64,000 nt of DNA from Laetmonice hystrix (lineage: Eukaryota), in NCBI GenBank assembly GCA_965235115.1, contig OZ249439.1:23684001-23748000 (forward strand), in the 5' to 3' direction. Every line of letters starts with the position of its first letter. The stretch's first letter is position 1. The position numbers and the translations under genes are program-made. The notes below the pieces were generated by a model. It saw nothing but the letters and a program-made list of their open reading frames with translations, did not search any database and was not told where the DNA came from. Below are positions 10,349 through 48,706 of the stretch, in pieces.

Positions 10349-10366
10349 GCCAGCACACAGCTCCAG

Positions 10367-10384: not shown

Positions 10385-10391
10385 GAAATTC

Positions 10392-20064: not shown

Positions 20065-20573
20065 TGGGGATGATTCTCCTTGACCAGTGGTTCTTCAGGG
20101 CTCACCTGAGCGAGACGGCAGACAGCGGGGGGTTGTCCGGGAGGTTGGGCCGATCGCCGCCCTTTGAGAACACCCCGGGTACGGGGTCGGTCAAATTTAC
20201 CTGGTGGTACATTGTTCCGATCATCCTCTACCACGGCGGGTTCGGCGTGTGGATGGGACTGGCCACTAACTACAACCTACACTACCAGATATCAGACATT
20301 GAGTGGGTTATCGTAGGGCTGGTGGTGTTCGTGCTAGGTGAGTTGATGGTCGTGGGTCGGACGGTGTGGGCAGCGAGGCAGGCCAGGCACTCGACCGATC
20401 CCGTGTTTGTAGGCAGTGCCATCATGCCCGTCGTCGAGATCGCTGAAGTTATATCCTGCGTTGGCTACGCATTCCTGACTTTGACTTTACCAGCGTGCAT
20501 CATGGCCTTCGTCAGGTTTATAATCGCAATCTTAGCCGCAGTGGCAAAGAAAGTTCACGGAACTGCTTTTTGA
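20065..20573 (+). pseudogene. Partial/chimeric copy 3 of the reductase-like gene
   Basis: Same junction (gtagccttggggatg); open frame fused to an upstream repeat-derived N-terminus (track ORF 19935-20573). Confidence 0.85.
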
Positions 20574-21699
20574 GAAAAAAAAAGAGAGAAGTAATTCACA
20601 AACTATCAATCATGCACGCACGCATGTTTCATATGTAGCCTAAATTCCAATGGAACTATGAATAGGCTACACCTATAGTTTCGTATAGGTAAAACATTAT
20701 CATTTCATCCTTATCATCCCGCCTTCAATAGGGGCCTACATTAGATAGGCTATAGGCCTAGGCCTAATGCATATTTTGATATCCTTTTTATGATATTTTT
20801 TATTGACACTGAACTTTGCAGTAACTTATGAAGCTTTTTGAAATATTCGTTATCTTACTGAGACCGTTATTTTATGTGATGCAGTGTTTATATAGAGGCC
20901 TACGTATTTGATCAAGGTGTAGTCGTTAGAGTAGGCCTATAGGCGTATCCTGAATGCATGACCATAGTAGCTATAGGCCTATACGGTGGCCAAACGCTAA
21001 ATCGTCCGCTAACATCCACCCCTAAATTGGTCATATATACATTTATAGGCCTCTGATATATTATAGACCTATGTCTGTGGTGCATTGTACGTATTTCTAA
21101 GTAAAATAAAAACACGAAGTAAGGGAGCGTATTCTTCGTAGCCTCATAGGCCTATCAACTCCCACCTTCACGTTTTGTTTTCTGGACAACCGTACACATA
21201 GCATAACGCGACAGAATTGCATTTACTTTCTCCATAACTCATAACAGATAGCATCAGGAACACCCTTTGTGAATGTGATGTGGTGCACGACCAATCCACG
21301 CTGCCATGCCCATCGGACTGGAGCCTTCTTAGACGCATAAGAAACAATCAAAGATATAGGCCTAGATTAAAACATCTTATGTAGATTTTATTAAAACAAG
21401 TTGGATATGATTGGTAACATATGCTAGTCTTCCAGGACAAATAATTAGGTTAGTTGTAGATTTGACATTCTGTTGGTGAAAAAAAGTTTTACGAGGTCGA
21501 ATTTGTGAACTGGGATAAATTTCACAGATAACCCATATTCTCCGGACCTCTTTCTTTAAGATTGGAAAGGAATGTTTATTATATTGGATATAAGTTACAA
21601 TACCTCCTACATGATGTTTCTTGTCTGCTCTAAACGTGCAACCTTTGCCCACGATAGGCAGCGCCATCTCGTGAGGAACGCAAATTAACGTGGTGGCCT

Positions 21700-22214
21700 T
21701 GGGGATGATTCTCCTTGACCAGTGGTTCTTCAGGGCTCACCTGAGCGAGACGGCAGACAGCGGGGGGTTGTCTGGGAGGTTGGGCCGATCGCCGCCCTTT
21801 GAGAACACCCCGGGTACGGGGTCGGTCAAATTTACCTGGTGGTACATTGTTCCGATCATCCTCTACCACGGCGGGTTCGGCGTGTGGATAGGACTGGCTA
21901 CTAACTACAACCTACACTACCAGATATCAGACATTGAGTGGGTTATCGTAGGGCTGGTGGTGTTCGTGCTAGGTGAGTTGATGGTCGTGGGTCGGACGGT
22001 GTGGGCAGCGAGGCAGGCCAGGCACTCGACCGATCCCGTGTTTGTAGGCAGTGCCATCATGCCCGTCGTCGAGATCGCTGAAGTTATATCCTGCGTTGGC
22101 TACGCATTCCTGACTTTGACTTTACCAGCGTGCATCATGGCCTTCGTCAGGTTTATAGGCCTAATCGCAATCTTAGCCGCAGTGGCAAAGAAAGTTCACA
22201 GAACTGATTTTTGA
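21700..22214 (+). pseudogene. Partial/chimeric copy 4 of the reductase-like gene
   Basis: Same junction; in-frame 6-nt GGCCTA insertion at ~22158; a 2-bp deletion upstream uncouples the repeat-derived start. Confidence 0.85.
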
Positions 22215-23349
22215 GAAAAAAAGAGAGAAGTATTTCACAAACTATCAATCATGCACGCATGTTTCATGTGTAGCCTAAATTCCAATGGAACTATGAATAT
22301 ACCTATAGTTTCGTATAGGTAAAACATTATCATTTCATCCTTATCATCCCGCCTTTAATAGGGGCCTACATTAGATAGGCCTATAGGCCTAGGCCTAATG
22401 CATATTTTGATATCCTTTTTATGATAGATTCTATTTTTATTGACACTGAACTTTGCATATAGGCCTAACTTTGGAAGCTTTTTGAAATATTCGTTATCTT
22501 ACTGAGACCGTTATTTTATGTGATGCAGTGTTTATATAGAGGCCTACGTATTTGATCAAGGTGTAGTCGTTAGAGTAGGCCTATAGGCGTATCCTGAATG
22601 CATGACCATAGTAGGCCTATAGGCCTAGGTATACGGTGGCCAAACGCTACATCGTCCGCTAACATCCACCCCTAAATTGGTATACATTTATAGGCCTCTG
22701 ATATATTATAGACCTATGTCTGTGGTGCATTGTACGTATTTCTCAGTAAAATAAAAAATGAAGTAAGGGAGCTTATTCATTCGTAGCCTCATAGGCCTAT
22801 CAACTCCCACCTTCACGTGTTGTTTTCTGGACAACCGTACACATAGCATAACGCGACAGAAATACATTTACTTTCTCCATATCTCATAACAGATAGCACC
22901 GGGAATACACTTTGTGAATGTGATGGGGTGCACGACCAATCCACGCTGCCATGCCCATCGGACTGGAGCCTTCTTAGACACATGAGAAACAATCAAAGAT
23001 TATATAGATTAAAACGGGCTATAGATTTTATTAAAACAAGTTGGATATGATTGGTAACATGCTAGTCTTCCAGGACAAATAATTAGGTTAGTTGTAGGTT
23101 TGGCATTCTGTTGGTGAAAAAAGTTCTACGAGGTCGAATTTGTGAACTGGGATAAATTTCAAGATAACCCATATTCTCCGGACCCCCGACTTTAATATTG
23201 GAAAGGAATATTTATTATATTGGATATAGGCCTAAGTTACAATACCTCCTACAATGGCTACATGGTGTTTCTTGTCTGCTCTAAACGTGCAACCTTTGCC
23301 CACGATAGGCAGCGCCATCTCGTGAGAAACATGCAAATTAACGTGGTAA

Positions 23350-26300
23350 CCTTGGCCCCGTTTCACGAAGTCGGCGACATCGCCGGCCCATATGAGGGAA
23401 AATGTCGCCCGCCCCATGCTTTAATTAACGTTGCAAGCTGGAGAAAAAAAGTTGGTGAAAAAAAATTCACGAGGTCGAATTATTGTGAACTGGGGAAGTG
23501 TTCAAAACATTGATAACCCATATTCTCCGGACCTCTTGTATTAAAAATGGGAAGGAAAATTTATATATTGGATGTAAGTTACAATACCTCCGACATGGTG
23601 TTTCTTCTGTGCTCTAAACATGCAAACTTCGCCCACTGTCGGCAGTGCCATCTCGTGAGAAACGTGCACATTAACGTGGTTGCCAGTCGACTCCGTCAGG
23701 GGGCTGAGCGTAGTGGGATGAATATCCACTGTCTTAATAATACCACATGCCTACTTAATAGTACATGTATTACCATCGGCTCCTTATTCAAACAAAAACG
23801 ATTTGGGCAAACCCTCCCACCCCAACCACCACCAAGCGGCTGGACGGAGAACCACCTGTTGGTTGATTACGATTGTGATGCGGTGCACGATCAATCCAGT
23901 TGGCCCCTAACCCTGCCCTATGGGACTGGAGCCTTTTGAGGCACATGGGAATCAATCCAAGATTTAGAATAAAAATAATTCTTCCATAAATTTGATTTAG
24001 ACAAGTTGCATATGATTGGGAAATGCTAGTCTTCCAGAACAAATATTTAGGTAAGTTGTGGATTCGACATTCTGTTGTCTAAATTGGTCATATTACACTT
24101 ATACCTCTGATATAATTATAGACCTATGTCCGTGGTGCATTGTACGTATTTCTAAGTAAAATATAAAAAAAAACGAAGTAAGGGAGCGTATTCATTCGTA
24201 GGCATATATCAACTCCCACCTTCACGTTTTGTTTTCTGGACAACCATACACATAGCATAACGCGAGAGAAATTGCATTTACTTTCTCTATCATAATAAAT
24301 AGCATTGGGAACACCCTTCGACCGGAAAACATCAAAATCGGGATAATATGCATGCATAGATATATTTCTAATTATTTCTTGATATCACTAAATCATTGTT
24401 GATGTCCTTAAATATTTAATTATATCAACAAATAATTAGAGATAGAGGTCTATCAGAAAATGACTTGGAGATATCACTAAATGAATTAATGATATCAAAA
24501 ATAGAAGTGGAATTAGGCCTAATGATATCTGCAATTTAAAGCAGTTACTCCAGGTGGCGGACTAGATAAAATAAGCAGAAAAGCAGTGCAACAACACTTT
24601 TGGAACTGTCTTGATGGTGCAGGGATTTTATATTATTTTTGTTAATTGTTACAGGTCATTATGCCCCCTATCGGCTTAACTCTGCATGATTTGCATTCAG
24701 ACTGTGGAGTTCAGGTGTGGAGTTGACCCTGGACAGTAAATCTTTCTTTCTGGCCGAGCTAAATTTGCTCGGCCAGAGTGCTCACCCGGGTCAACATGGG
24801 CTAAGCGCGTTCTCATACAGCTCAGCACCACTGATCCGGGGATTACCTGGGGAAATCCTCAGTGTGAACCTGCCCTAAGGGGAGGTTCTCACTGAGGATT
24901 CCCAAACTGCCATCTAGCGGGACATTATAGGATCCCTGTGACTGTCGACCGATCTCTTATTCGTGTTTAGCGTCTCGAAGCAGGATTAATTTAAAAGCCG
25001 TCTCGAAAGTAGTGTTAATGGGGGAAATGGCTAGACTTCTAGGCCTATCCTATACTGCTAGACCTATAGGCCTATCCGAGACGAGATCTAGGCCATAGAT
25101 AGTCTCGTTCATACCTACAACGTTAGGCCTATATGATTAATTTTTATTAGCATGTTTTTTATAATGCGATGCGGTGTGGATAGAAGTTTAGATACACCTA
25201 AGGCCTAGTCCTACAGTCAATCCAAGACGCAGGCCTACCCTTCTTAGACACATCAATCATGATTGGTATCATGCTAGTCTTCCAGGACATTTGGTTAGTT
25301 TTAGATCTGACATGCTGTTGGTGAAAAAAATAATTTTGCGAGGTCGAATGCTGAACTGGGATATTTTACAGTTTTTTTGTTTTGTTTTTCAGTGATAACC
25401 CAAATTCTCCGGACCTCTTGTAGTTAGAACGGGAAGGAATATTTATATATTGGATGTAAGTTACAATACCTCCGACTTGGTGTTTCTTGTCTGCTCTAAA
25501 CGTGCACTTTGGCCACGATACTCAATGCCATCTCGTGAGAAACATGCAAATTAACATGGTAGCCCTGTGCACTGCACCTGTACTAATAAGCCTAGTATTA
25601 GTGTATTGCCAGTCGACTCCGTCAGGGGGCTGAACGTAGTGGACTGAATATCTACTTTAAAATCTGAGGTTTTCATCATTTTTTAAGTTTTAAGGGCATG
25701 TTTGGTGCCTGATTTTCGGCTTATATGTGGACACCAGAAAATTTTCGACGAACGACCCCAAATTTTGCCCAGAGATGCCTGAAAACACCGAGAACCTAAT
25801 GTGCTAGATCCGGAACTTAGATTTAGTAAGCTATAGCCTAGCTACATGGTCGCTAGATGTCTCCCCCTTCATAGCCTACTCTGCATCCATTTAGGCTTCT
25901 GGAAGCGTGTTGACGCATGCACAGTAATTAAGCTGGAGATTGCACATAAGACACATAGGAAACAATCAAAGATAGGCCTATAGATTAAAACATCTTCTGT
26001 AGATTTTATTAAAACAAGATGCTATGATTGGTAACATGCTAGTCTTCCAGGACAAATAATTAGGTTAGTTGTAGGTTTGATATGTTGGTGGAAAAAAAAC
26101 ATTCATGAGGTCGAATTTCTGAATTGGGATATTGTTCATTGATAACCCATATTCTCCGGACCTCTTACATTACAGACGGAAGGAAAATTTATATATTGGA
26201 TATAAGTTACAATACCTCCGACATGGTGTTTCTTGTCTGCTCTAAACGTGCAACCTTTGGTCACGGTAGGCAGCGCCATCTCGTGAGAAACATGCAAAGT

Positions 26301-28210
26301 AACATGGTAGCCTTGAGTAGTTTAGCTGTGTTGACTGGCCGGCCCGACCACTAAATGTGCGTAGTCATTTAGAGTTAGAGCCTATTTAACTGTCTAGCCT
26401 TTGTTAGTAAATACGTCATCGGAAGTTCAAGAGATTTAGGCAGCCTTATGAACAGAAAATGAAATACATTTTACCAAAGTCATAGGCCTATATCTGCACT
26501 CAATCAGCCACTTTTAATTTTGATACTTGGTCACCTGTAGGCCTATTTCGAGTTTTTTTTTCACCTACCCCGGTAGCTGTTCTATGTTTTTACGTGTACT
26601 GTTTGTCCTACTTTGTACTATTTTTAGTTAATTTGGCCTGCCGATCACCGCTATTATTTAGACGACTAGGCCCTATATTACTGTATTACCAGACGACTCT
26701 GCCAGGGGGCTGCACGTAGTGGAACTGTGAATATCTACTTCCTTAATAATACGACAGGTCTACTTTATATTATTACGGTCGGCTCCTTATTCAAATAAAA
26801 CACGATTTTGGCAAACGCTCCCCCAGCACCTAGCGGCGGGACGGGGAACCACTTGTTGGTTGATTATGACATTAGAGTCTAGTCATCATCGGGGTGGAGC
26901 CGTCTTAGACACACATAGGAAACAACCAAAGATATATAGATTAAAACATCTTCTGTAGATTTTATTAAAACAAGTTGGATATGATTGGTAACATGCTAGT
27001 CTTCCAGGACAAATAATTAGGTTAGTTGTAGGTTTGATATGTTGGTGAAAAAAAAAATTCACGAGGTCGAATTTGTGAAATGGGGGAAGTGATCATAGTT
27101 ATGATAACCCATATTCTCCGGACCTCTTAAATTATATGCGGGAAGCAATTTTTATATATTGGATGTAAGTTACAATACCTCCGACTTGGTGTTTCTTGTC
27201 TGCTCTTAAAGAGGGGGGGTCATAATTATGCCACTTTACTTGTAAGTTGGAATATATTTCACAAAAAACATCTTCTACGGATCCCCCAACATACACACCC
27301 TTACCAACCCCCCTGTGAGTGACGGGAGTGGGTAACATCATCCCCGTGCTGAAAACGCTCTGTTCGGCACCACTGAGTGCTCCACTGTGGTGGGTGACGT
27401 CACAAAATTGTAAACAGAGCCTGGAGCAGCAATAAGATAGGGTCATGGCATCTTCAGATTCAGATAACTCCTTTTCTAATGATGAATCCAGTTATGAGAT
27501 GGAAAATTTCTACGATTCTGGAAGTGGGATAGATGAGGAGGAGGATGTTGGAGCAGAACAAGAGGTTTTGGGGTGGATGTATGAGCCACAGAGATGGGCA
27601 TCTCCGAAGTGGTCAAGTGCTACACACATAGCCTAGAACCACCCCTTCTTGAGCTGTTATAAGTTCATCCACTTTCTCTTCAGGGTTTCCTCTTTTGGTA
27701 TAGAGAAAAGAGACACCCCATCTGGACATGACTGGCTACAATACTTCAGACAACTAGCTTCACCATTTTCTCTTGACAATCTTGTGGGCATGTAAGCCGG
27801 TGTCTTCACTGCGCTATCATAGTTGCTGATAGCGCGTGGCATGGCTTGGGTTGATCTGGGTCATCCCATTACCAGTTTGTGACTCATATAATGATATGCA
27901 GTGTTGATGGACCTAGATCGGGCCGTTTGGGAAAGGGGTGAGGAATGCCACTTAGAGTGTCCCTATAAAATATGTTTTCTTTGTACACCGGCACTTATAT
28001 TCAGGAATTGGGCTCGAAACTATTCTATTTCAATGATATTTAATGGAAACAACTTAAAATTATTATGACCCCCCTCTTTAACGTGCAACCTTTGGCAACG
28101 GTAGGCAGCGCCATCTCGTGAGAAATATGCACATTAACATTGTTCTCTTGCGCACTTCAGCATGCCTCTACTACCAGTCCACTCCGCCAGAGGGCTGAAT
28201 GTAGTGGGAC
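23350..28210. repeat. Older, diverged tandem array of the same non-coding module (~0.7-1 kb spacing)
   Basis: gataacccatattctccggacctc...tatattggat(a/g)taagttacaatacctcc...gtttcttgtctgctctaaac recurs near 23510, 25395, 26140, 27105; ccagtcgactccgtcagggggctg recurs near 23685, 25610, 26690, 28175. Confidence 0.85.
27210..28077. mobile_element. Internally deleted Kolobok-type DNA transposon (868 bp)
   Basis: TIRs AGAGGGGGGGTCATAAT / ATTATGACCCCCCTCT with TTAA on both sides, interrupting a repeat copy (ctgctc|...|cgtgcaacc). Retains two convergent ORF starts: acidic ...VLGWMYEP (27445+, KolX-like) and a THAP-like fragment CSQSCPDGVSLFSIPKEETLKRKW (~27780-27657, minus). Confidence 0.8.
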
Positions 28211-29791: not shown

Positions 29792-30465
29792 TCATTCTCT
29801 GATCAAAGCATCAGAGATGGCTTGCACTTCAATTATGACGTTGCCGGATGTGTCTGACACATACATCCGGCAACTCGCGTCATTCACTGCATTGGAAAGC
29901 ACCGTGGAATAACGAATCTCTGACAAATTCGGATTTGGGGTGGTAGTTCGTTGGCTCGGTTGTTCCTGATTCTCAGGCTGTAGTTCTTGATCCTGACCCT
30001 CCCGGGTAATAGAAGCAGTATGCCGGTTTACCGCCTCACCATGATTTGGGGTGGAAGAATCACATCGTGAACTACCTTCTGCAGTCGGTTCCACTTGGCC
30101 ACCTGGCGGCTGCTCGGAGCATTGTTCACTGATCCGAGTCTCAGCTGAGATATTCCCTTGTTGTTGTGGAGGTCGTTGCCTCCGCGGACTCGCACTTCCT
30201 ACTGCGTGAACCGTTTGACTTCGGGCGTGCTCGACCCCCTCCAACGCCCTGTTGTTGGTACTATTGACAGCAATCTCCTCCTCAATAAATGTGGGGTTTC
30301 CGTTACCCGAGGTGTGAGCGCCGAATATCTCAGCGTAGGTGGGCGGATCCTTGGAGATCGTTTCGTAACTCGGCGGTAGGAAGGCGTACGGATGACCTGG
30401 GTCGAAAAATGGCGGCACGTCCATGTCGGGAAGGTCCAAGACGGACAATTCATTACCCGTGTTTC
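29792..30465 (-). CDS. Shisa-like 1 exon 4 (cytoplasmic tail with PY motifs)
   Basis: Acceptor ttcccatttcag, phase 1; PPSYETISKDPPTY; ends at stop 29792. Confidence 0.85.
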
Positions 30466-33400
30466 CTGAAATGGGAAATAAAAAGTGTGTGTATTTCTGG
30501 TACATTTCTACGGAAGCGCAGTACTGCTACACCAGAAGAAAAAAAATGACGTACTTGTGTGGCAGCACTGCGCTTCCGTAGGCCTACTTATCAAATTAAT
30601 TTAAATGATCAATCTTAGTTCTTTCTATTATATCAAATGTATGTCCTACAAAAACACTACCACCTTGTGTATTTGTACGCCCCATATTCACTAGACTTTA
30701 CAGACTGCATGTATTATTCGGAGTGTTTGCTTGCAAGTGTCTTGATATTTTCGATAGTCGCTGTCGCTATTGGTTGATTCAGTGAATCAGAAAGTAAAGT
30801 TTCCGATTGACACGCCATCTGGGGTGTTATTGGAGAACCAATAGTGGGCCTATGGGCGGCACCACCATAGTTGTTAAAGGAATCAAACGACTATGACCTC
30901 TATGATCATGAATAAGTAGGTGGGTAAACATTTGTGATTGTCTTCAGTAAGTGTCGGGTCTCACACGTTATACTGACCCAGAAAATAAGCGGTCGGTTTA
31001 TAATCTTGAATACAAATTGAATGATTATTACTAGTGATAAGATTTTATTCTGGGTGATTCGGCTGTACATTGTGTATTGTTAGAGCATCAATGACAGTCT
31101 TGTTTATTGTTTCGTGGATGGATATATTTCTTGATTCGCGAGCAAGGAAGTCCCCCCCCAGCATCTTTGTAAATGTTCTACGTCGATTTTTCGCGCTCAA
31201 CTATGTGTGACTAATTAAACGAAATTAAACAAAGCATGAGAAATAAAAAAAACATGGCAAGCAAACAAACAAATCTGGGCTCTACCATGGCGTCTGCGGC
31301 GGTGTCTCTCGGAGCGCATACCGTTATTGGCGTTGTGTGCGCAACATTGACAGCAACAGGCGGCGCTCACCATGACGAGTATCAGGACTGCTAACATTCC
31401 TACCATCAACTGCCATCTGAAACATAACCCAGTGTCAATCAGCATGATCAGGACTGCCAACATTCCTACCATCAACTGCCATCTGAAACATAACCCAGTG
31501 TCAATCGGTGTGATCAGGACTGCCAACATTCCTACCATCAACTCATTCACTGCCATCTGAAACATAACCCAGTGTCAATGAGCATGATCAGGACTGCCAA
31601 TATTCCTACCATCAACTGGTATCTGAAACATAACCCAGTGTCAATGAGCATGATCAGGACTGCCAACATTCCTACCATCAACTGGTATCTGAAACATAAC
31701 CCAGTGTGATGAGGACTGCCAACATTCCTACCATCAACTACCATCTGAAACATAACCCGGTGTCAATCAGCATGATCAGGACTGCCAACATTCCTACCAT
31801 CAACTGTCATCTGAAACATAACCCAGTGTGATGAGGACCGCCAACATTCCTACCATCAACTGCCATCTGAAACATAACCCAGTGTCAATCAGCATGATCA
31901 GGACTGCCAACATTCCTACCATCAACTACCATCTGAAACATAACCCAGTGTCAATCAGCATGATCAGGACTGCCAACATTCCTACCATCAACTGCCATCT
32001 GAAACATAACCCAGTGTCAATGAGCATGATCAGGACTGCCAACATTCCTACCATCAACTGCCATCTGAAACATAACCCAGTGTCAATCAGCATGATCAGG
32101 ACTGCCAACATTCCTACCATCAACTACCATCTGAAACATAACCCAGTGTCAATGAGCATGATCAGGACTGCCAATATTCCTACCATCAACTGCCATCTGA
32201 AACATAACCCAGTGTCAATGAGCATGATCAGGACTGCCAACATTCCTACCATCAACTGCCATCTGAAACATAACCCAGTGTCAATGAGCATGATCAGGAC
32301 TGCCAACATTCCTACCATCAACTGGTATCTGAAACATAACCCAGTGTCAATGAGCATGATCAGGACTGCCAACATTCCTACCATCAACTGGTATCTGAAA
32401 CATAACCCAGTGTGATGAGGACTGCCAACATTCCTACCATCAACTACCATCTGAAACATAACCCGGTGTCAATCAGCATAATCAGGACTGCCAACATTCC
32501 TACCATCAACTGCCATCTGAAACATAACCCAGTGTGATGAGGACCGCCAACATTCCTACCATCAACTGCCATCTGAAACATAACCCAGTGTCAATCAGCA
32601 TGATCAGGACTGCCAACATTCCTACCATCAACTACCATCTGAAACATAACCCAGTGTCAATCAGCATGATCAGGACTGCCAACATTCCTACCATCAACTG
32701 CCATCTGAAACATAACCCAGTGTCAATGAGCATGATCAGGACTGCCAACATTCCTACCATCAACTACCATCTGAAACATAACCCAGTGTCAATCAGCATG
32801 ATCAGGACTGCCAACATTCCTACCATCAACTACCATCTGAAACATAACCCAGTGTCAATGAGCATGATCAGGACTGCCAATATTCCTACCATCAACTGCC
32901 ATCTGAAACATAACCCAGTGTGATGAGGACCGCCAACATTCCTACTATCAACTGCCATCTGAAACATAACCCAGTGTCAATCAGCATGATCAGGACTGCC
33001 AACATTCCTACCATCAACTACCATCTGAAACATAACCCAGTGTCAATGAGCATGATCAGGACTGCCAACATTCCTACCATCAACTGCCATCTGAAACATA
33101 ACCCAGTGTCAATGAGCATGATCAGGACTGCCAACATTCCTACCATCAACTGCCATCTGAAACATAACCCAGTGTGATGAGGATTGCCAACATTCCTACC
33201 ATCAACTGCCATCTGAAACATAACCCAGTGTCAATGAGCATGATCAGGACTGCCAACATTCCTACCATCAACTGCCATCTGAAACATAACCCAGTGTCAA
33301 TCAGCATGATCAGGACTGCCAACATTCCTACCATCAACTGCCATCTGAAACATAACCCAGTGTCAATGAGCATGATCAGGACTGCCAACATTCCTACCAT

Positions 33401-36400
33401 CAACTACCATCTGAAACATAACCCAGTGTCAATGAGCATGATCAGGACTGCCAACATTCCTACCATCAACTGGTATCTGAAACATAACCCAGTGTCAATG
33501 AGCATGATCAGGACTGCCAACATTCCTACTATCAACTGCCATCTGAAACATAACCCAGTGTGATGAGGACTGCCAACATTCCTACCATCAACTGGTATCT
33601 GAAACATAACCCAGTGTCAATCAGCATGATCAGGACTGCCAACAATCCTACCATCAACTACCATCTGAAACATAACCCAGTGTCAATCAGCATGATCAGG
33701 ACTGCCAATATTCCTACCATCAACTACCATCTGAAACATAACCCGGTGTCAATCAGCATGATCAGGACTGCCAACATTCCTACCATCAACTGGTATCTCA
33801 AACATAACCCAGTGTCAATGAGCATGATCAGGACTGCCAACATTCCTACCATCAACTGGCATCTGAAACATAACCCAGTGTCAATGAGCATGATCAGGAC
33901 TGCCAATATTCCTACCATCAACTGCCATCTGAAACATAACCCAGTGTGATGAGGACCGCCAACATTCCTACTATCAACTGCCATCTGAAACATAACCCAG
34001 TGTCAATCAGCATGATCAGGACTGCCAACATTCCTACCATCAACTACCATCTGAAACATAACCCAGTGTCAATCAGCATGATCAGGACTGCCAACATTCC
34101 TACCATCAACTGCCATCTGAAACATAACCCAGTGTCAATGAGCATGATCAGGACTGCCAACATTCCTACCATCAACTACCATCTGAAACATAACCCAGTG
34201 TCAATCAGCAGGATCAGGACTGCCAACATTCCTACCATCAACTGGTATCTGAAACATAACCCAGTGTCAATCAGCAGGATCAGGACTGCCAACATTCCTA
34301 CCATCAACTGGTATCTGAAACATAACCCAGTGTCAATCAGCATGGTCATGATCAGGATAACCTCTACTACACAGTCAAACACATGTGGAGGCAGCCGCAT
34401 GTTATGCCTTGATATATACTTTTAGAATTTATACTTTCGTTATTAAGAACCACTATTCAAGGTTAATTTCAGCGCTTTTGAAGGGAGTATATGAGAACGT
34501 TATATATGAGGACGACTCACGGAATATAAAAACAGTTTGTCCAATTGAAACGTTTTAAATTCACTGCGAAAGACCAGATATGTGAACATTTTAAGCACCT
34601 CCTACCAAAAACAGTTTGAAATTGCAAAAAAATAACACAGTTGTAGAATTATTTGAATTGTCTATTTTTACTCTAATACGCCACTCCTACTTACTGATAC
34701 ATAGCTAGTTTCGTATCCCGACATGTAGTCGTGTCGTTCGGGTATTTCGCTGAGATTTCTGAAGCCGTGTCATTACAGCAATATCTGTTGTGCTCAGTGC
34801 CGCAGCAGAACAAACCGTCATCGCAATCAAACGGTCCCTCTAGGTAATCACTCGAATCGCAGTAACCCGAACAACGTATCGAAGATGCTATAAGCAAATA
34901 TATATAGGCATTAAGGCACATATAGAACATATTTTGTTGGATACGGTTGTACAGAGTATATGCCATAATGTATACTTAGAATTTATTATGATCTGATATA
35001 AATTGGCAACTTGAGACGGATGGACAATGGGGTGGGGGGGGGTGGGGGGGGGGTTACCAGACTAATTTTTTCATGTTTTCACATTACATTGTGAACGGTA
35101 TAATATTAATAAGTATATATATCAAGGGGGGGTGGGGGGGTGGGGGGGGGGGTTACCAGACTAATTTTTTCATGTTTTCACATTACATTGTGAACGGTAT
35201 AATATTAATGCTAGATTATAGGTTAGAAACATAACATAACAGTAGTAGGCCTATAGTAAAAAAAGACGAATCAGGATGAATCAGCTAAACTGGATCTGAA
35301 CGTTAACAAGGTCCACATTTAGCTGACTTTATCTCAGCTGATTCAATATCTTGGTATTAGAGAGACCGGTACAATGTGCAAGGAGTGTCGTCAATACATG
35401 TATTGTGGAATCGTAATCATGTTCTGTAACCTCAGAACTAGAGTAGTCCAAGGTCACAATGTTCATCCCTGCCACGCAGAACTTCTTGTAGTATAATGTG
35501 AATATATATCAGGGGCCGGTTTTTTGTTTACTTTTCGACCGTGAGCAAGGGTGAGCAGAAGCTCATGCTCACCGTTTTGCTCACTGTTTTCGTTTTTTGG
35601 GGTGTTTTTCCGTGAGCTTGCTCACCATGAGCACGCCTCATGGAAAAAACAACCCAAAAATACACAAAAACGGTGAGAATGAGCTCATGCTCACCCTTGC
35701 TCACGGTGGAAAAGTAAACAAAAAAAACCGGGCCCAGAAGCTCATGCTCACCGTTTTGCTCACTGTTTTCGTTTTTGGGGGTGTTATTCCGGGAGCTTGC
35801 TCGGTATGAACACGTCTCATGGAAAAAAGCAACAAAAAAAAAGAACGAAAACGGTGAGGATGAGCTCATGCTCACCCTTGCTCAGCTCAGCTCACCCTTG
35901 CTCACGGTGGAAAAGTAAACAAAAAAGCCGGGCCCAGGAGAGAAACTACGCAATCTCGTAGATTCACACTGTAGGTCATGGGTTTAGGACCATTTTACAG
36001 TTTAAGAGTCATGACGTTATTATACCTTAAGTCGCGGGAGTTCAAGTTTTTACATGTTGCCAGATAAACCTTTCGTCATCTAATAGTTATTCTATTTCTC
36101 GAACAGGAGAAAGTATTCTGAAATACCATTACGTTTTTTCTATTAATTTGGTCGTTGAGGATAAATGCTCAATGTCAAGAAGGTGAATATGCTATGGTCA
36201 ACTCCATAGGAAGCAGTACGTCAAGGAGCATCATATCAAGTCTTTATGACGTCTTAAAGACATCAAACAGGGTATCACTTGACCAGCCCCTAAGATTTTT
36301 AAAGGTATCGTAATCCCATCTGACTACCTCAATAATGTCTTTCTTACTCACCTGGGTGAGTGAGGGTTACAAACAGGAGCGAAGTGAGTGTCGTATAAAA

Positions 36401-36403
36401 CAT
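29792..36403 (-). CDS. Shisa-like single-pass membrane protein, paralog 1 (4 exons, 347 aa)
   Basis: Exons 36403-36352, 34887-34701, 31416-31286, 30465-29792; all GT-AG with matching phases 1/2/1; total 1044 nt. ACCACCATG Kozak, signal peptide, CSGYC..C..FCCG..YCC..C ectodomain, TM, CCCQCC cluster, PPSY and PPTY motifs. Confidence 0.85.
31286..31416 (-). CDS. Shisa-like 1 exon 3 (TM + Cys cluster)
   Basis: Acceptor ttatgtttcag, donor G|GTAGAG; encodes WQLMVGMLAVLILVMVSAACCCQCC. Confidence 0.8.
31376..34345. repeat. 66-bp minisatellite (~45 units, with 56-bp variants) built from the intron 2/exon 3 junction of Shisa-like 1
   Basis: Unit atgatcaggactgccaacattcctaccatcaactgccatctgaaacataacccagtgtcaatcagc; on the minus strand it reads ...ttatgtttcag|ATGGCAGTTGATGGTAGG.... 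Confidence 0.97.
34701..34887 (-). CDS. Shisa-like 1 exon 2 (Cys-rich ectodomain)
   Basis: Acceptor tttgcttatag, donor AT|GTATCA; encodes CSGYCDSSDYLEGPFDCDDGLFCCGTEHNRYCC. Confidence 0.85.
35029..35208. repeat. ~100-bp direct tandem duplication beginning in G-runs
   Basis: G-run + ttaccagactaattttttcatgttttcacattacattgtgaacggtataatattaat occurs twice. Confidence 0.85.
35512..35935. mobile_element. MITE with ~45-bp TIRs and partial tandem duplication of its right part
   Basis: Left ggggccggttttttgtttacttttcgaccgtgagcaagggtgagc; inverted copies end at ~35736 and 35935; internal gctcatgctc/gagcatgagc repeats; no clear TSD. Confidence 0.7.
36352..36403 (-). CDS. Shisa-like 1 exon 1 (signal peptide MFYTTLTSLLFVTLTHP)
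   Basis: ACCACCATG; donor CAG|GTGAGT, phase 1. Confidence 0.8.
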
Positions 36404-37971
36404 GGTGGTTTCCAGTAGAACACGAAGGTCACCCCAATACATTCTCTACTCGGAGAACGTGCACGTATTGGCACACGAATTCCAGCAGAATTCACAGCCA
36501 GAGTGTTTATAATATGGAACAGATTGTGGCAATGGGTATAGAAGTAGGTGGCATTAAGACGACGTCATGTGGCGACCTATATATGACATAGATAACAGCC
36601 ATTGATTAAAAGACGCCCACTCATGCACGTTTACACACACCCATACCAGTTCGCGTCTTCTTTATATGAAAGTAGGAATTTCGTTAGCTTTATGAAAAAA
36701 ACCAAAAACCCGGATTACTGGAAAATGCGTTCCAAGTCTGATCAAAATTATATTAACAGTCCGGATTAACTGCAATGCAATTTGTAATTTATGCCACACC
36801 TGCGCAGTATCCCTGCGAGTGACAGTTCTGAGTGTTGTCTCTCCGTGCGTGCGATAACTAGGGGAAGGTCCAACATGAGAAACCAGATTGTAAACCAGTT
36901 GAAATGAAAAATGATAAGGATTCAAGTGAATATACAGGGAGGTTACAAAATGAATAATATAGGTTATCGTTTGATGATCTTATACACAACTGTCCGCCTT
37001 TGTGTCACAGTGTAATGTTTGTGTACATACCCAATATGAATACAATATAGGCCTTCCCATGGTAATGCGTAAGCGACACTAATCTAAAAGGGGAATGCAT
37101 ACAACCATTATAGGTAATGCGTTTTTTTCCCAATTATCCTGCCACGTCACTTTTACCACTCCGAGACTCCTAAGACAGTTCAAACCCGGGTTGAAAAGCC
37201 CGTACCACTGTAATTCTATAGAGAGATCAAATCGGTTATTTGTTGGTTTTGCCTATAACAGACCCCGGTGGTTTGGATAGGGAGAAAATGTGTTCAAAAT
37301 ATATTGGTTGTAGTTCACGTTCAACTTCAACCAGATCCTTATAGTTTGCACATGTTTGGCGAATCCACTACATTTTGGCGAACGCACTATAAAGTGAGAC
37401 AAACGAAATCATGCATTTATCATTTAAACATGCCTTCGATATAGATTGATAAAATGTAGCTTAACACATTTGTATGTCAAACATCTTTTATCATAATTTT
37501 TGTACACGCTATACCACCTGACTTCTTATCTATACACTGGAAAACACCATTTAACGTCAGCCATTGACACCGTCTCAAATCGGCCTATAGGCCTACTGCC
37601 CTAAGTTCTCCAACAATCATACAATGTTTATACCTCTATAAGGAATCTAGATCATTCACAGTATAAACTTCCCACGTAATCATGAGAGTTATGAACATAC
37701 CCTATAGGCAAAAGAAAGAGGGATGGGGCGGGGTGCAAGTCCCTTTCTATACTGAATTTAAAAGATGGAAATTATATGAGTGTTAATCAACGTCATCTGA
37801 CATTTTCAGAATCGCGCAAACTCTCGTGGATGACGGACTTTAGCTGACAGGAAGTGTAACTTTGTGTCCGAACATATTCACTTTAAGAATTAACTGTTGG
37901 GATACAGGGTGGTAATCATTAGAGTTTTAGGATGTTTAGAAAATGTAGCCCCCTATAAATGCATATTTTGT

Positions 37972-38468
37972 TTATTGAACCACTGGGAAAGCATTTGTGT
38001 TTGGAACTTGTTCAGCTGTGAGATGTGAGTGAGTCCAGGGCGCTGCAGGTTGTTGTTCTAAACGGAATGTATACAGAGGCGGCGGTTCGGTCTCATCCAC
38101 ACAAACATGCGCAAAGGTGGCCTCCGATGACGTCCCCGGTGTGGAGGCAGCATCTGTCGCCACGCCCTCTACTGGAGAGTCAGAGTGGGGTTTAGGTCTA
38201 CCCCTCCTGGCGGCGGAGGCAGGAACTAAGCCCGATTCTGACGGTACAGTCTCCGAGGTGGATGCCGAGGGACCCGAGGCGGACTCCTCGGTATCGAATG
38301 CTGGGTTGTCTCTCCCGGGGTTGAAGATCTCCTCGTATTTGGGGGGATCCTTAGGGAGCGAGTCGTAGGATGGTGGCTCGAACGCGTGCGGTACTGTGGG
38401 ATCGAAATCTGAGGTCGGGCAGTTGTGTTCTGGGATACTGCCACAGACAGTCTCCAGACCATGGCTCT
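37972..38468 (-). CDS. Shisa-like 2 exon 5 (cytoplasmic tail with PY motifs)
   Basis: Acceptor ttttatttcag, phase 1; PPSYDSLPKDPPKY, similar to the paralog 1 tail. Confidence 0.85.
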
Positions 38469-41400
38469 CTGAAATAAAAGAGGACACGCTGTATAAGTAG
38501 GAACGAATCGTTTAAGTAAATTGTATGTGTAATGGGAGGCTCATGGTAAATAGCTAACACAATAATTCTTGACCCGCTTTCAATGCCTTATCAAGACAAG
38601 GTCAAAGAACTCAGTAGGTAAAATTGGGAGGTGTCTTTCTTTTATTATACAGACTAGGCCTGCTATAGTACATTCATGAAATTCAATGAGATAAAACCAT
38701 GTATTTGGCAGGTAGGTAACTGGTATATTTCAAGGTGAGAAGGAAATAATGATGGCTATATTAATCAGAGCATCGTTACAGCTAGGGCAGACCGAAGTTT
38801 TGAGGCCACAGTACACCGGCCTACACAAAACGTCATAAAAAAGTTTTAGTCAGACAATACGGTTATCAAATATCTCTGCTCGCTGCCTTAAAGGGACCCC
38901 CTGTAATTACCCCCCGTTCTTACCCCGCCCCCCGGTCATTACCCCTTCCCGCTCACCGTTGCCCGAAGTCCTGGTCCCTCTCAGTCTCCGCGTTGGTTCG
39001 TTACTATGACATAAACCGACAGCACAGTAGTAAACACAAGCACTGAACATCATCAGGATCATGATGGTCCCCAGCAGTCCGATAACGATACGCCAGCTAC
39101 AACAACAAAATGATAGTAGTAAACACACGCACTGAACATCAGCAAGATCATGATGGTCCCCAGCAGTCCGATAACGATACGCCAGCTACAACAACAAAAT
39201 GATAGTAGTAAACACACGCACTGAACACCATCAGGATCATGATGGTCCCCAGCAGTCCGATAACGATACGCCAGCTACAACAACAAAATGATAGTAGTAA
39301 ACACACGCACTGAACATCATCATGGTCCCCAGCAGTCCGATAACGATACGCCAGCTACAACAACAAAATGATAGTAGTAAACACACGCACTGAACACCAT
39401 CAGGATCATGATGGTCCCCAGCAGTCCGATAACGATACGCCAGCTACAACAACAAAATGATAGTAGTAAACACAAGCACTGAACATCATCAGGATCATGA
39501 TGGTCCCCAGCAGTCCGATAACGATACGCCAGCTATATACAACAACAAAATGATAGTAGTAAACACACGCACTGAACATCATCAGGATCATGATGGTCCC
39601 CAGCAGTCCGATAACGATACGCCAGCTACAACAACAAAATGATAGTAGTAAACACACGCACTGAACATCATGAAGATCATGATGGTCCCCAGCAGTCCGA
39701 TAACGATACGCCAGCTACAACAACAAAATCTTAGTATATTAATATTAGTAGGCCTACACAAATATATACTTGAAACAAGAAAAACTTTTTTTTTAAATAC
39801 TGATTTCTCATGTTAAAAAGATAATTCCGCTTAACATAAAATCCTTTAATTGAGAAATAATTTTCTTTGGCGAAATAATGTTTCATAATAAGTGAGTTTG
39901 TGAAAATCGGTATCTTACTGGTACAACCACCAGGCTGAGGATGGACAATTTTCAACATCCTTCAAGTAACCGACATCTTTAGCAGGGTCAGCGCAGCAAT
40001 ATCGAATGTTTTGTCCACCGCAACAAAACACCTACAACACATGCAAGCACACGTAACGATATCTCCAGTCAAAACACTATGGCGCAACGCAAAGTTACAT
40101 TATGCCCTCATAATGTAACTTTAAAGGTTTCAATCAATTTCAGTCGAATTTTCAAAGCGTCAATTCTTAGTTCACAGATGAATTTCTTGGTCCATATATT
40201 TCGAATGCATAGTTCTAAGAGTTGTCGATGTCAGCTGAGCGCATGTGTTGAAATGAACTGTACAAATGAATTAAATGCCGTTTCGATATCTTAACATTTT
40301 ACGTGAATGAAAAAATCATGCGATAAATATTGACCAATCAGGAAGTTTAACTGAGTTAACGTAAACCGTATACATTTCTGAGAGAATTCTCTTGGACTAT
40401 ATGACTTAAATAAGCTCTCGACCGCACCTCCCGCCTATATTTACAGTATTAAATATAAAGGTCTCGGCTGCACCTTCTGCCTATATTTACAGTATTAAAT
40501 AAGCTCTAGACTGCACCTCCTGCCTATATTTACAGTATTAAATAAGCTCTCGGCTGCACCTTCTGCCTATATTTACAGTATTAAATAAGCTCTAGACTGC
40601 ACCTCCTGCCTATATTTACAGCATTTGACCCTTTCGTTCGAGATACACTCTTCACTATAATAATTATAATCACCGGTTGGCCGATAACGAGGCTCTCACA
40701 AAGCGTCCGGCCTTTGTAGCCCCCGAAGATGTCGCAGTACGCACTACAATAAACGATGTCTCGGCGGCTTGTTGCTAGAGAAGTCGGAGTGGTAAATATG
40801 GACGGACGAGAAGTTGTCTGCGCAGAGACAGGAACACCTAGAAAATAATGTAGAAAACAGAACAACAGGGTTATAGTACATGTAATCGTAAAACATATTT
40901 CCGCGGAAAAGAGAATAACTGTTTCATCGGCCGATGGCGCGTAACACCACTATGAGCGAAGATAATAATGACGAAAAGGCATAATTATGAGGTCGCCCAT
41001 ATTAGGCAGACTGTTTGGGGGGGGGGGGGGGAGAAATTCACCTAATCCTTCCTTTTACTTCTTTTATGCAAACATAAAATGTTACATTTTAGTATTGTAG
41101 TATTTGAAAATATTTGGTGATATTTACCGAGTGCTGGACGTCTATATACTTACTTTACGTCAACATTGCCTTACTTTACGTATTATAGAGGCGTCAGTCA
41201 GCATTGTCATAATACAATCTTACTTTACGTATTATAGAGGCGTCAGTCAGCATTGTCATATACAATCTTGCTTTACGTATTATAGAGGCGTCAGTCAGCA
41301 TTGTCATATACAATCTTACTTTACGTATTATAGAGGCGTCAGTCAACATGGTCATATACAATCTTACTTTACGTATTATAGAGGCGTCAGTCAATATTGT

Positions 41401-42945
41401 CATATATACAATCTTACTTTACGTATAATAGAGGCGTCAGTCAGCATTGTCATACAATCTTACTTTACGTATTATAGGGGCGTCAGTCAGCATTGTCATA
41501 ATGCAATCTAGAGGCGTCAGTCAACATTGTCATATACACTCTCACTTTACGTATTATAGAGGCGTCAGTCAACATTGTCATATACAATATTATTTTACGT
41601 ATTATAGAGGCGTCAGTCAGCATTGTCATATACAATCTTACTTTACGTATTATAGAGGCGTCAGTCAACGTTGTCATACACAATCTTACTTTACGTATCA
41701 TAGAGGCGTCAGTCAACATTGTCATCCTACTTTACGTATAATAGAGGCGTCTGTCAACTTTGTCATCTTACTTTACGTATTATAGAGGCGTCAGTCAACA
41801 TTGTCATATACAATCTTATTTTACGTATCATAGAGGCGTCGGCCAACATTGTCATATACAATCTTATTTTACGTATCATAGAGGCGTCAGTCAGCATTGT
41901 CATATACAATCTTATTTTACGTATTATAGAGGCGTCAGTCAACATTGTCATATACAATTTTACTTTATGTATTATAGAGGCGACAGTCGACCTTGTCATA
42001 TACAATCTTACTTTACGTATTACAGAGGTGTCAGTCAGCATTGTCATATACACTCTCACTTTACGTATTATAGAGGCGTCAGTCAACATTGTCATATACA
42101 ATATTATTTTACGTATTATAGAGGCGTCAGTCAACATTATCATATACAATTTTACTTTATGTATTATAGAGGCGACAGTCAACCTTGACATATACAATCT
42201 TACTTTACGTATTACAGAGGCGTCAGTCAGCATTGTCATATACAATCTTACTTTACGTATTACAGAGGCGTCAGTCAGCATTGTCATATACAATCTTACT
42301 TTACGTATTATAGAGGCGTCAGTCAACGTTGTCATACACAATCTTACTTTACGTATTATAGAGTCAGTCATTGCCATATACAATCGATTACAGACGATCA
42401 CAAGCCTCGTCACTGCCGGGTAAGTGTTCTTATCGATATATAGATTACATGATATCAATAGCGACTTATTTGCACTTCTCCGCACAGTGCATTTAGTATG
42501 TGATGGTAAATCCTTGTATCTCTAAGCCAACCATAATAATATTATGATAATTGCCATCGGACACCCATGTTATTCTCCCCTCAGACATTTTGCAAACTGC
42601 GGATATTATATTCATAGTGACACAATTTCCTCCTAAGTATTTGGCTAAGCAGTTCTCTAAAGAGTAAAATGATTAAGTATTTTACTGATCGATAGTTTAG
42701 TTCCAGACGTTTTAATTGAGAGAGAGAGCCGAGCATTTCTGGAACACACGACCCTTCATCGAAATGTGACGTTTTATCAACTGATAGCCCTAGGCCTATA
42801 TATGATCACGGCGCGAAGCTGATCGGGTGTATAGTTCACGTTCACACATTATTATTAGGTAATTTAGGTAAACACGAGGTAGTTAGTACCCACCTGGTGA
42901 AAAGGAGAAGTATCCTAAGAAACAAAGAAGTAGCCAAACAAACAT
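37972..42945 (-). CDS. Shisa-like single-pass membrane protein, paralog 2 (5 exons, 321 aa)
   Basis: Exons 42945-42894, 40837-40674, 40031-39919, 39096-38957, 38468-37972; GT-AG with phases 1/0/2/1; total 966 nt. Signal peptide, CSAYC..C..FCCG..YCC..C, TM, PPSY/PPKY/PPLY motifs. The donor at 40673 (GTGATT) is weak. Confidence 0.82.
38957..39096 (-). CDS. Shisa-like 2 exon 4 (TM)
   Basis: Acceptor ttttgttgttgtag; WRIVIGLLGTIMILMMFSACVYYCAVGLC; donor G|GTGAGC. Confidence 0.8.
39026..39729. repeat. 89-bp minisatellite (8 units) built from the intron 3/exon 4 junction of Shisa-like 2
   Basis: Exon-start positions at 39096, 39185, 39274, 39354, 39443, 39532, 39625, 39714. Confidence 0.96.
39919..40031 (-). 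CDS. Shisa-like 2 exon 3
   Basis: Acceptor gtgttgtag; VFCCGGQNIRYCCADPAKDVGYLKDVENCPSSAWWLY; donor CA|GTAAGA. Not in the ORF track. Confidence 0.82.
40406..40621. repeat. 43-bp tandem repeat (5 copies, alternating variants) in Shisa-like 2 intron 2
   Basis: ttaaataagctctagactgcacctcctgcctatatttacagta. Confidence 0.92.
40674..40837 (-). CDS. Shisa-like 2 exon 2
   Basis: Acceptor attttctag; T/S-rich stretch then YCSAYCDIFGGYKGRTLCES. Confidence 0.75.
41149..42390. repeat. 48-bp minisatellite (~26 copies) in Shisa-like 2 intron 1
   Basis: tacaatcttactttacgtattatagaggcgtcagtcagcattgtcata. Confidence 0.96.
42894..42945 (-). CDS. Shisa-like 2 exon 1 (signal peptide MFVWLLLCFLGYFSFSP)
   Basis: gagccATG; 52 nt ending CCAG|GTGGGT, same length and phase as paralog 1 exon 1. 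Confidence 0.75.
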
Positions 42946-46900: not shown

Positions 46901-48706
46901 AATCGTTAAATATCGGGTATTTACTTGGGCCAGTCATCGCCCCCGTTATAATCGTTATATATTAGGCCACTTAAAATTAATAAATTGTTTTACATGACTC
47001 CAACTTCTGAAATGTTGGTGAGTAGGGCATTTTATATTTTATATTTTTCCTCGACAAGAAGAAGGACAGCATAGATCACCAATACTGGAAAAATACTTTT
47101 AATTTCTCAATATCTCAACATTTTGTACAGCCCTTCTATACCTTGAGGGTCACTTTAACTGTAACACCCTGACAGAACTGTGGGAGACTAGGTTTAACAA
47201 GAAATTTTAAAGCTAGAATACTGAACATTAAAAAAGCCAACAATTGAAGTTTCAAAAGATATGCACATAGAGTCCTCAATACCAAATATGTACCCACTGA
47301 AGGAATTGAAGGATAGAAGGATACACCACCGATAGATGGCGCGCGGCGTGCGCTTGCACTGACGATCTCTAACGGTTTTGGGGATGAAAAAAACGGACTT
47401 TTTGAAAGTTATAAAATATTAAAAAAATCGAGGCGGCGCCAAAAAATTGAGGCGGCCGGCCATGTAAAACAATTTATTAATTTTAAGTGGCCTTATATCG
47501 GGTATTTACTTGGGCCAGTCATCGCCCCCGTTATAATCGTTATATATCGGGTATTTACTTGGGCCAGTCATCGCTCCCGTTATAATCGTTATATATTATA
47601 TCGGGTATTTACTTGGGCCAGTCATCGCCCCCGTTATAATCGTTATATATCGGGTATTTACTTGGGCCAGTCGTCGCTCCCGTTATAATCGTTATATATC
47701 GGGTATTTACTTGGGCCAGTCATCGCCCCCGTTATAATCGTTATATATCGGGTATTTACTTGGGCCAGTCATCGCCCCCGTTATAATCGTTAAATATCGG
47801 GTATTTACTTGGGCCAATCATCGCCCCCGTTATAATCGTTATGTATCGGGTATTTACTTGTGCCAGTCATCGCCCCCGTTATAATCGTTATATATCGGGT
47901 ATTTACTTGGGCCAGTCATCGCCCCCGTTATAATCGTTATATATCGGGTATTTACTTGGGCCAGTCATCGCCCCCGTTATAATCGTTAAATATCGGGTAT
48001 TTACTTGGGCCAATCATCGCCCCCGTTATAATCGTTATATATCGGGTATTTACTTGGGCCAGTCATCGCCCCCGTTATAATCGTTATATATCGGGTATTT
48101 ACTTGGGCCAATCATCGCCCCCGTTATAATCGTTATATATCGGGTATTTACTTGAGCCAGTCATCGCCCCCGTTATAATCGTTATATATCGGGTATTTAC
48201 TTGGGCCAGTCATCGCCCCGTTATAATCGTTATATATCGGGTATTTACTTGGGCCAGTCATCGCCCCCGTTATAATCGTTATATATCGGGTATTTACTTG
48301 GGCCAGTCATCGCCCCGTTATAATCGTTATATATCGGGTATTTACTTGGGCCAGTCATCGCCCCGTTATAATCGTTATATATCGGGTATTTACTTGGGCC
48401 AGTCATCGCCCCCGTTATAATCGTTATATATCGGGTATTTACTTGAGCCAGTCATCGCCCCGTTATAATCGTTATATATCGGGTATTTACTTGAGCCAGT
48501 CATCGCCCCGTTATAATCGTTATATATCGGGTATTTACTTGGGCCAGTCATCGCCCCGTTATAATCGTTATATATCGGGTATTTACTTGGGCCATCATCG
48601 CCCCCGTTATAATCGTTATATATCGGGTATTTACTTGGGCCAGTCATCGCCCCCGTTATAATCGTTATATATCTGGTATTTACTTGAGCCAGTCATCGCC
48701 CCCGTT
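46901..48706. repeat. 48/49-bp minisatellite (~26 copies), interrupted by a MITE after the first unit
   Basis: tatatcgggtatttacttgggccagtcatcgcccccgttataatcgtta. Confidence 0.96.
46965..47492. mobile_element. PIF/Harbinger-type MITE (528 bp)
   Basis: Perfect 32-bp TIR ggccacttaaaattaataaattgttttacatg with TTA on both sides; the empty-site variant gttatatattatatcggg is present in the array at ~47588. Confidence 0.9.

Follow-up and report, generated by a model that had tools for sequence, protein, structure and literature searches.

We studied a 64,000-nt stretch of the Laetmonice hystrix genome (hereafter the window; assembly GCA_965235115.1, contig OZ249439.1, forward-strand positions 23,684,001 to 23,748,000), in which two Shisa-like genes, gene 1 and gene 2, lie as tandem neighbors on the minus strand. 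In both genes, the exon encoding the transmembrane (TM) helix is preceded by a minisatellite (array 1 and array 2, respectively) built from copies of that exon's own 3' splice site, or acceptor, and of the first part of its coding sequence. These arrays are "mirage" minisatellites, a known class that the initial annotation did not recognize. Their units are repeated head to tail (66 bp in 46.1 copies and 89 bp in 8.0 copies), lie within the ~10-200 bp of this class, span an intron-exon boundary of their own gene and contain a splice signal in every copy; the last copy runs without a break into the authentic exon, and the gene is intact. The coordinates of the exons and arrays, which refer to the whole window, are collected in Table 1.

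Table 1. Exons and minisatellites of the two Shisa-like genes, in window coordinates.
Feature	Position	Strand	Content	Basis
Gene 1 (Shisa-like 1), first coding exon	34695..34930	-	Putative signal peptide and cysteine-rich Shisa_N domain	Open reading frame and sequence
Array 1	31417..34375	-	45 decoy copies of the acceptor and the start of the gene 1 TM exon	
Gene 1, true TM exon	31286..31416	-	WQLMVGMLAVLILVMVSAACCCQCC... and basic stretch; final copy of array 1	
Gene 1, C-terminal exon	29792..30465	-	PY motifs PPSY, PPTY; stop codon	
Gene 2 (Shisa-like 2), exon 1	42894..42945	-	Putative ATG and signal peptide (MFVWLLLCFLGYFSFSP), donor GTGGGT	Sequence inspection
Gene 2, cysA exon	40674..40837	-	First half of the cysteine-rich domain (...YCSAYCD...)	
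Gene 2, cysB exon	39919..40031	-	VFCCGG..YCC..WWLY; ends in ...TACCA followed by GT, phase 2	
Array 2	39097..39736	-	7 decoy copies, 89 nt long except for two variants of 80 and 93 nt	
Gene 2, true TM exon	38957..39096	-	WRIVIGLLGTIMILMMFSACVYYC...RRLRGTRTSGN, donor GTGAGC; 140 nt	
Gene 2, C-terminal exon	37972..38468	-	PY motifs PPSY, PPKY, PPLY; stop codon	
43-bp x5 minisatellite	40406..40625	-	Gene 2 intron 2, ~50 nt past the cysA donor	
48-bp x25 minisatellite	41170..42363	-	Gene 2 intron 1	

Both genes combine the features of the Shisa family, namely a Shisa_N domain, a single TM helix following it, and a PPxY-containing tail. The Pfam Shisa_N profile (PF13908) matched gene 1 with E=1.1e-10 (41.9 bits; C4:23718733-23718876 in the genome search) and the cysB exon of gene 2 with E=4.7e-5 (23.8 bits, against a cut-off of 22), the Shisa_N domain of gene 2 being interrupted by an intron. 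By inspection, each TM exon encodes a hydrophobic stretch of 20-23 residues, and in both proteins the PPxY motifs lie in a proline-rich cytoplasmic tail. The same domain order is found in the full-length cDNA-type homologues P0010, P0018, P0021, and P0022; homologues on ~1-kb or cDNA-type contigs (P0006, P0008, P0020, P0010, P0018, and P0022) were used solely for validating gene models. The two proteins are 36-38% identical in the cysteine-rich part and 38-45% identical in the PY tail, and by their sequences the genes are old paralogs. A word-indexed search with the tail of gene 1 recovered no homologues.

The exon structures of the two genes could be resolved in detail. The first coding exon of gene 1 ends in ...TATCA, followed by the donor GT at 34694-34693, in phase 2; its start codon is probably the one at 34930, the alternative being an acceptor near 34887. 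The 131-nt TM exon of gene 1 ends at the donor GT 31285-31284. An alternative in-phase donor exists at 31321, and we favor the longer exon because its ERHRxRR stretch is conserved in the gene 1 orthologue of another species (contig L056, described below). Gene 2 comprises five coding exons, encoding the signal peptide, cysA, cysB, the TM helix, and the PY motifs, and a homologue of cysA is kept in L056 at 7440-7505. An imperfect 20-bp x2 duplication lies within its signal-peptide coding sequence (window 42906-42944).

In both genes, the exon preceding the array ends in TA(C/T)CA, followed by GT, and contributes two codon bases across the junction. In every repeat unit of both arrays, a pyrimidine tract precedes an AG, after which come the opening TM-helix codons (W-x-x-x-x-G-x-L...). 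Since the upstream exon ends and the anatomy of the units match, both arrays occupy the homologous phase-2 acceptor, in keeping with what the initial annotation had proposed for this pair of Shisa-like paralogs. The final copy of each array leads on, with the phase maintained, through the rest of the exon and its donor to the PY-motif exon.

Array 1 was delimited by Tandem Repeats Finder at 31381-34348 (period 66, 90% matches, score 4765), with a higher-order period of 386 bp x7.7. Its decoy units measure 66 nt (n=36), 56 nt (n=8), or 74 nt (n=1). Each contains a branch-point-like CTGAT/TTGAC, then a pyrimidine tract, and then an AG, and the exon part of the unit corresponds to the first 36 nt of the TM exon. 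The decoys are identical to the true acceptor over positions -30 to +24, and the 66-nt units differ from one another by 3.7% on average. An in-frame stop codon is found in 15 of the 45 units, and nine of the 45 shift the reading frame. The deletion that distinguishes the 56-nt variant matches the unit-junction region exactly, and part of the intronic half of the unit is similar to the continuation of the exon. Array 2 (39026-39736; period 89, 93% matches, score 1253) has a higher-order period of 258 bp x2.7. Its unit joins ~18 nt of intron to the first 71 nt of the gene 2 TM exon, and its decoys are identical to the true acceptor over -18 to +56. Short-read contigs break at this array, with none seen to span it, and ~1% heterozygosity is visible in the flank. 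Entry at any decoy of array 2 leads to a frame ending in ...YYYHFVVVAGVSLSDCWGPS-stop 41 residues on; the predicted product would retain the TM helix and lack the PY tail. Two further minisatellites in the introns of gene 2, with units of 43 and 48 bp (Table 1), do not span a junction and served as controls.

Each array derives from its own gene, in agreement with the initial annotation: The exon part of the consensus unit matches its own TM exon at 35/36 (gene 1) and 70/71 (gene 2) positions, versus 19/36 and 35/71 for the TM exon of the other gene. The accompanying claim that the units share no sequence holds for the lack of a common repeat sequence, but both units do cover homologous codons. 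Similarity to the own gene would by itself also be compatible with an ancestral array subject to concerted evolution. The decisive comparison came from a profile-free search with the tail of gene 2, which recovered an orthologue (P0004, 54% identity) on contig L056 (ENA ERZ26168297 contig_348) of another species. This contig carries orthologues of both window genes in conserved order and orientation, and its introns preceding the two TM exons (~520 and ~445 nt) each have a single acceptor. As L056 holds both orthologues, each with a single-copy acceptor, the duplication that gave rise to genes 1 and 2 is older than the split between the species, and the acceptor arrays formed later and separately, as had been proposed for them. 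Single acceptors were also found in two more distant, repeat-poor relatives, L059 (GCA_022478865.1) and L064 (GCA_000328365.1, which we take to be an annelid), the latter with an intron of 55 nt before the TM exon. These findings now provide direct comparative evidence that arrays of this kind appear recently, and in independent events, at one and the same exon of old paralogs.

The public gene model for the L064 locus (P0014; L064:3750-3960) has no TM helix, as it uses an internal CAG within the TM exon as its acceptor. This is probably an annotation error, since a complete TM exon follows the 55-nt intron.

A survey of other family members, which the initial annotation had put forward as a check, revealed further arrays at the same exon. 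Searching the 627-Mb genome with the Pfam Shisa_N profile yielded six strong loci. In paralog g3 (C13:17.02 Mb), the TM acceptor lies in a 73 bp x9 array, comprising eight decoys and the true site, whose unit consists of 25 nt of intron and 48 nt of the TM exon. In paralog g4 (C13:26.07 Mb), it lies in a 32 bp x17 array. The TM acceptor of paralog g5 is clean. The TM exons of g6 (C13:11.72 Mb) and g7 (C5:11.78 Mb) were found neither within 10 kb nor by peptide searches, and these two genes were excluded from all junction counts. Orthologues of the g3/g4 type in two other species (L049 and L050) have single acceptors. In L056, the TM exons of both orthologues of the window genes carry arrays on the donor side (8691-9420 and 13897-14109). 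One of these has a 73 bp x10 structure made of 46 nt of exon and 27 nt of intron; the other, with units of 44/55 bp, reiterates the donor together with the 6 nt of exon before it, resulting in five donor copies. Overall, the TM exon carries a junction-spanning array on either side in six of seven family genes from two repeat-rich genomes.

The family loci presented several additional features. Besides its TM-acceptor array, g4 carries a donor array (84 bp x18.8; L006:6101-7671, G000:C13:26.08 Mb) on the "mid" exon that follows the TM exon; it repeats the end of that exon (..YAVNYTVCPHSNYMR) and GTAAGT and is the only mirage of the family seen outside the TM exon. A chi-like motif, GCTGGTGG, is present in each unit of the g3 array. 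Between g3 (L001/L009) and g4 (L006), the Shisa_N exons share ~90% DNA identity, as opposed to 46% protein identity for the TM exons; this points either to gene conversion of the exon for the ectodomain or to a strongly uneven constraint. In g5 (L008:895-1017 and 2092-2207; G000:C13:21.45 Mb), a second phase-compatible TM exon lies 1.1 kb downstream of the first, both sharing a [WY]CxCxRxD motif, and the pair may be mutually exclusive exons. About 1 kb past the second of these exons (L008 3000-3560), a 128-bp array of its acceptor has a decayed pseudo-exon at its end. A recently amplified Shisa-like subfamily (VFYCPMPFE..CCG..YCC) was encountered in L039, L044, and L046 (G000:C19:0.86-1.07 Mb). 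There, a 40-bp array of 11-37 copies adjoins and resembles the acceptor of the cysteine-rich exon, with a 39-bp array downstream; the 40-bp array may be an old acceptor mirage. A 49-bp array at window positions 47494-48706, a 72-bp array in L002, and a weak match in L054 were checked and proved not to be junction arrays or TM exons.

To assess how often junctions are hit in this genome, we used as a baseline 73 exon pieces of myosin motor domains (146 ends, 130 kb), in which arrays were scored by eye. Arrays spanned five of the 146 ends (four acceptors and one donor), corresponding to 3.4% per end and 5.5% of acceptors. The acceptor arrays measured 59 bp x5.6, 104 bp x2, 103 bp x2.4, and 50 bp x3.5+, and the donor array 34 bp x13.9; they were located in L019, L025, L026, and L017 (C20, C12, and C18), with two genes carrying two each. 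A model of uniform duplication gives ~1% per junction, and the ~2.5-4-fold excess at the myosin ends is not significant. A general mechanism directed at expressed splice junctions, which the initial annotation had offered as one of two explanations, is therefore not needed. Among the 14 TM-exon junctions of the seven family genes, six were spanned by arrays, compared with one of 25 other junctions of the same genes (Fisher p=0.005) and with the myosin exon ends (Fisher p=5e-5). With the two window genes removed, the TM-exon count was 4/10, which still differed from the other junctions (1/17; Fisher p=0.047) and from the myosin exon ends (Fisher p=0.0009).

We considered four alternatives to a bias toward this exon acting on arrays that are merely tolerated. 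The arrays might be artefacts of assembly, that is, repeats collapsed or expanded and not present in the genome in this form; assemblies are error-prone at long tandem arrays, and the copy numbers given here rest on the assembly. However, in short-read DNA contigs from three runs of the same sample, the only runs recovered for this organism, contigs end at the edges of array 2 (39011-39055 and 39700), and the array's k-mer unitigs reach 4-11 times the depth of the flank. Because independent contigs end at the edges and the k-mer depth is raised, we regard array 2 as real; the same architecture is moreover found at many unrelated loci and in the assembly of the second species, which leaves an artefact scarcely credible. 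A single array that predated the duplication of genes 1 and 2, and that has since evolved in concert with each gene's own exon while its unit length changed, would agree with the tendency of arrays to homogenize with the adjoining exon, with the ability of units to shrink by internal deletion (as in the 56-nt variant of array 1, at the unit-junction region), and with the partial likeness between the intronic half of the array 1 unit and the continuation of the exon. Yet the acceptors of the L056 orthologues are single although the duplication predates that species split, L059 and L064 have no arrays, the array edges show no tail of degenerate units, and the units differ by only 3.7% where the introns of the paralogs cannot be aligned. 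A common ancestral array was already disfavored and is, in our view, very improbable.

Coincidence, by contrast, deserves more weight. According to this explanation, junction-spanning minisatellites are so frequent in this genome that no exon-specific cause is needed. Minisatellites do make up ~10% of the 314 kb sampled and 20-44% of the Shisa loci, and mirages occur at 3-5% of the myosin exon ends, a rate at which a pair of paralogs would share a hit on a homologous junction with a probability of 0.5-1.2%; some such pairs are thus expected genome-wide. The second Shisa-like subfamily, with no mirage on its TM exon, points in the same direction. Nevertheless, the replication set is significant alone, the other junctions of the same genes are at background (1/25), and the pattern of both paralogs being hit at the same junction is repeated independently in the second species. 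While isolated coincidences between paralogs are expected, a repeated pattern is not. Chance, which the initial annotation had left open, would therefore account for some shared hits in the genome and is a rather unlikely explanation for the recurrence in this family. Selection for splice variation of the TM exon was the other explanation initially offered. In its most explicit form, the stacks of decoys would serve as a splicing rheostat that diverts transcripts to tail-less isoforms, to premature-stop isoforms subject to nonsense-mediated decay, or to TM-exon variants, thereby tuning the dose of a PY-motif adaptor. The recurrence at one exon in paralogs and in a second species, the predicted gene 2 decoy product with cysteine-rich and TM domains and no PY motifs, the in-frame decoys at the end of array 1, the two phase-compatible TM exons of g5, and the use of the nearest pseudo-sites in human IFI6 and CBS (PMC1557585) would all fit such a role. 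The arrays, however, differ in unit length, exon boundary, and exon side, and share no coding outcome: Of the acceptor-array unit lengths (66, 89, 73, and 32 bp), only 66 is in frame. The stops, deletions, and frameshifts of array 1 accumulate as they would in neutral DNA, repeat-poor relatives manage without arrays, and the mirages that were tested leave splicing undisturbed (PMC3087553, PMC3902484). We therefore find selection for splice variation improbable, and we are equally doubtful of the broader proposal that the TM exon is a heritable hot spot (four paralogs and two orthologues) whose decoys are used as a dose-setting splicing rheostat.

On balance, we lean toward the view that these are tolerated mirages that arose independently, with a real bias toward one exon. 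The arrays are most likely by-products, rather than adaptations, of a genome highly prone to tandem duplications of 30-100 bp, and it appears that arrays either target the family's TM exon preferentially or are better tolerated there. Several observations weigh against this interpretation. The myosin baseline covers a single gene family with 146 exon ends; the hypothesis was widened post hoc, after L056 was seen, from the TM acceptor to either junction of the TM exon; and with acceptors alone, the replication stands at 2/5 (P ~0.03 at the 5.5% rate). No TM-exon mirage was found in the second Shisa-like subfamily (five to six independent genes on C19 and C29). In array 1, the two decoys nearest the true exon keep an open reading frame in phase with it and could add 22 or 44 residues to the protein. 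DNA folding did not differ between array-bearing and array-free TM exons and leaves the bias unexplained. G+T richness found no support as a driver in general: On the sense strand, G+T makes up 65-71% of the four TM-acceptor units, but the strand skew of 53 minisatellite units from the 314 kb has a median of 0.558, equal to that of random segments (0.558).

Two possible causes of the bias were considered and rejected. A hairpin or CTG-like structure that triggers slippage found no support in the folding of 11 TM exons, with z-scores of -0.35 to +1.46 relative to shuffles. A single breakpoint within the exon is inconsistent with the scatter of the exon-internal unit ends, which lie at +36 to +51, +71, +48, and +14 from the acceptor for the 66-, 89-, 73-, and 32-bp units, and at -46 (73 bp) and -6 (about 50 bp) from the donor in the donor arrays. 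The neutral options that remain for the TM-exon preference are a better tolerance of decoys and a local mutational bias.

For such tolerated mirages, we envisage the following origin. A short tandem duplication reaching from the intron into the TM exon would have copied the 3' splice site along with the exon's opening 36 nt in gene 1 and 71 nt in gene 2. It probably arose by replication slippage at microhomologies of a few bases. Such microhomology can be seen at array 2, where TACTA is present both in the intron, directly upstream of the first unit, and at that end of the unit which lies in the exon. Because a head-to-tail duplication keeps its last copy contiguous with the remaining exon and the donor, the gene would stay intact and the other copies would become intronic decoys. 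Unequal exchange would then have expanded the arrays, at first by single units and later by blocks of 386 and 258 bp. By analogy with the mirages that were tested, exon definition would lead the spliceosome to match the donor downstream with the acceptor next to the exon; only the downstream context, consisting of the exon remainder and the donor, can mark the true site, because the decoys are otherwise identical. The decoys would accordingly be silent, or else leak into frameshifted transcripts with premature stops.

The nature of the bias determines what these arrays could teach us. If it is mutational, it points to a local determinant, in sequence or chromatin, of the birth of minisatellites. 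If it reflects tolerance, the arrays offer a natural experiment on how the spliceosome chooses among dozens of identical sites, and those on the acceptor side put exon definition to the test against scanning. In the unlikely case that the arrays are selected, they would represent a new way to tune gene dose.

Two large repeats lie elsewhere in the window. Two direct repeats, at positions 1-835 and 10479-11313, are 100% identical and surround long minus-strand open reading frames of 1342 and 572 amino acids (4590-10348), and the region 1-11313 looks like a recently inserted long terminal repeat retroelement. The second, a large macrosatellite at positions 15700-27200, is made up of tandem or segmental units that measure ~1.3-3.1 kb and are 80-95% identical.

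The closest known counterparts are the mirage minisatellites of amphioxus, described in Adh3, troponin C, globins, and PGBD5, with normal splicing by reverse transcription PCR (PMC3087553, PMC3902484). Among them, the paralogous globins BflGb6 (acceptor) and BflGb9 (donor) are affected at the same exon 2 (PMC3087553, PMC3902484). The arrays described here share with the amphioxus mirages a unit of tens to ~150 bp that spans the intron-exon boundary, an authentic copy adjacent to the exon, concerted evolution within the array, and the possibility of occurring on the acceptor or the donor side. They differ in belonging to another animal lineage, in the much higher copy number reached in the window (46), in affecting the same exon in four paralogs and two orthologues of a second species, and in being known from DNA alone.

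Tandem exon duplications that create mutually exclusive exons likewise consist of duplicated exon sequence with its own splice sites, and the pair of TM exons in g5, ~1.1 kb apart and phase-compatible, resembles them. The units in the window contain 36 of 131 or 71 of 140 nt of the exon and do not include its donor. Because they hold only the 5' part of the exon and have no matching donor, they cannot be complete alternative exons.

In human genes, variable number tandem repeats (VNTRs) that span exon boundaries are known from F7 IVS7 (37 bp), IFI6, CBS IVS13, LMNB2, and PDGF intron 4, where the authentic site is normally the one spliced, with any use of pseudo-sites limited to the nearest two (PMC1557585). 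As in the mirages, the first monomer of these VNTRs spans the exon-intron junction, and identical pseudo-splice sites follow the true one. The geometry of F7 (4 nt of exon and 33 nt of intron) is that of the gene 1 orthologue in L056 (6 nt of exon and the donor). The human cases, however, are on the donor side and each confined to a single gene, whereas the window arrays are on the acceptor side. Exon definition is invoked for acceptor arrays because scanning from 5' to 3' would choose the first, wrong copy. Measured against these systems, the arrays in the window are clean and very large cases of a known oddity, with as many as 46 identical 3' splice sites one after another, found outside the lineage in which it was named, and in themselves they are ordinary for this genome.

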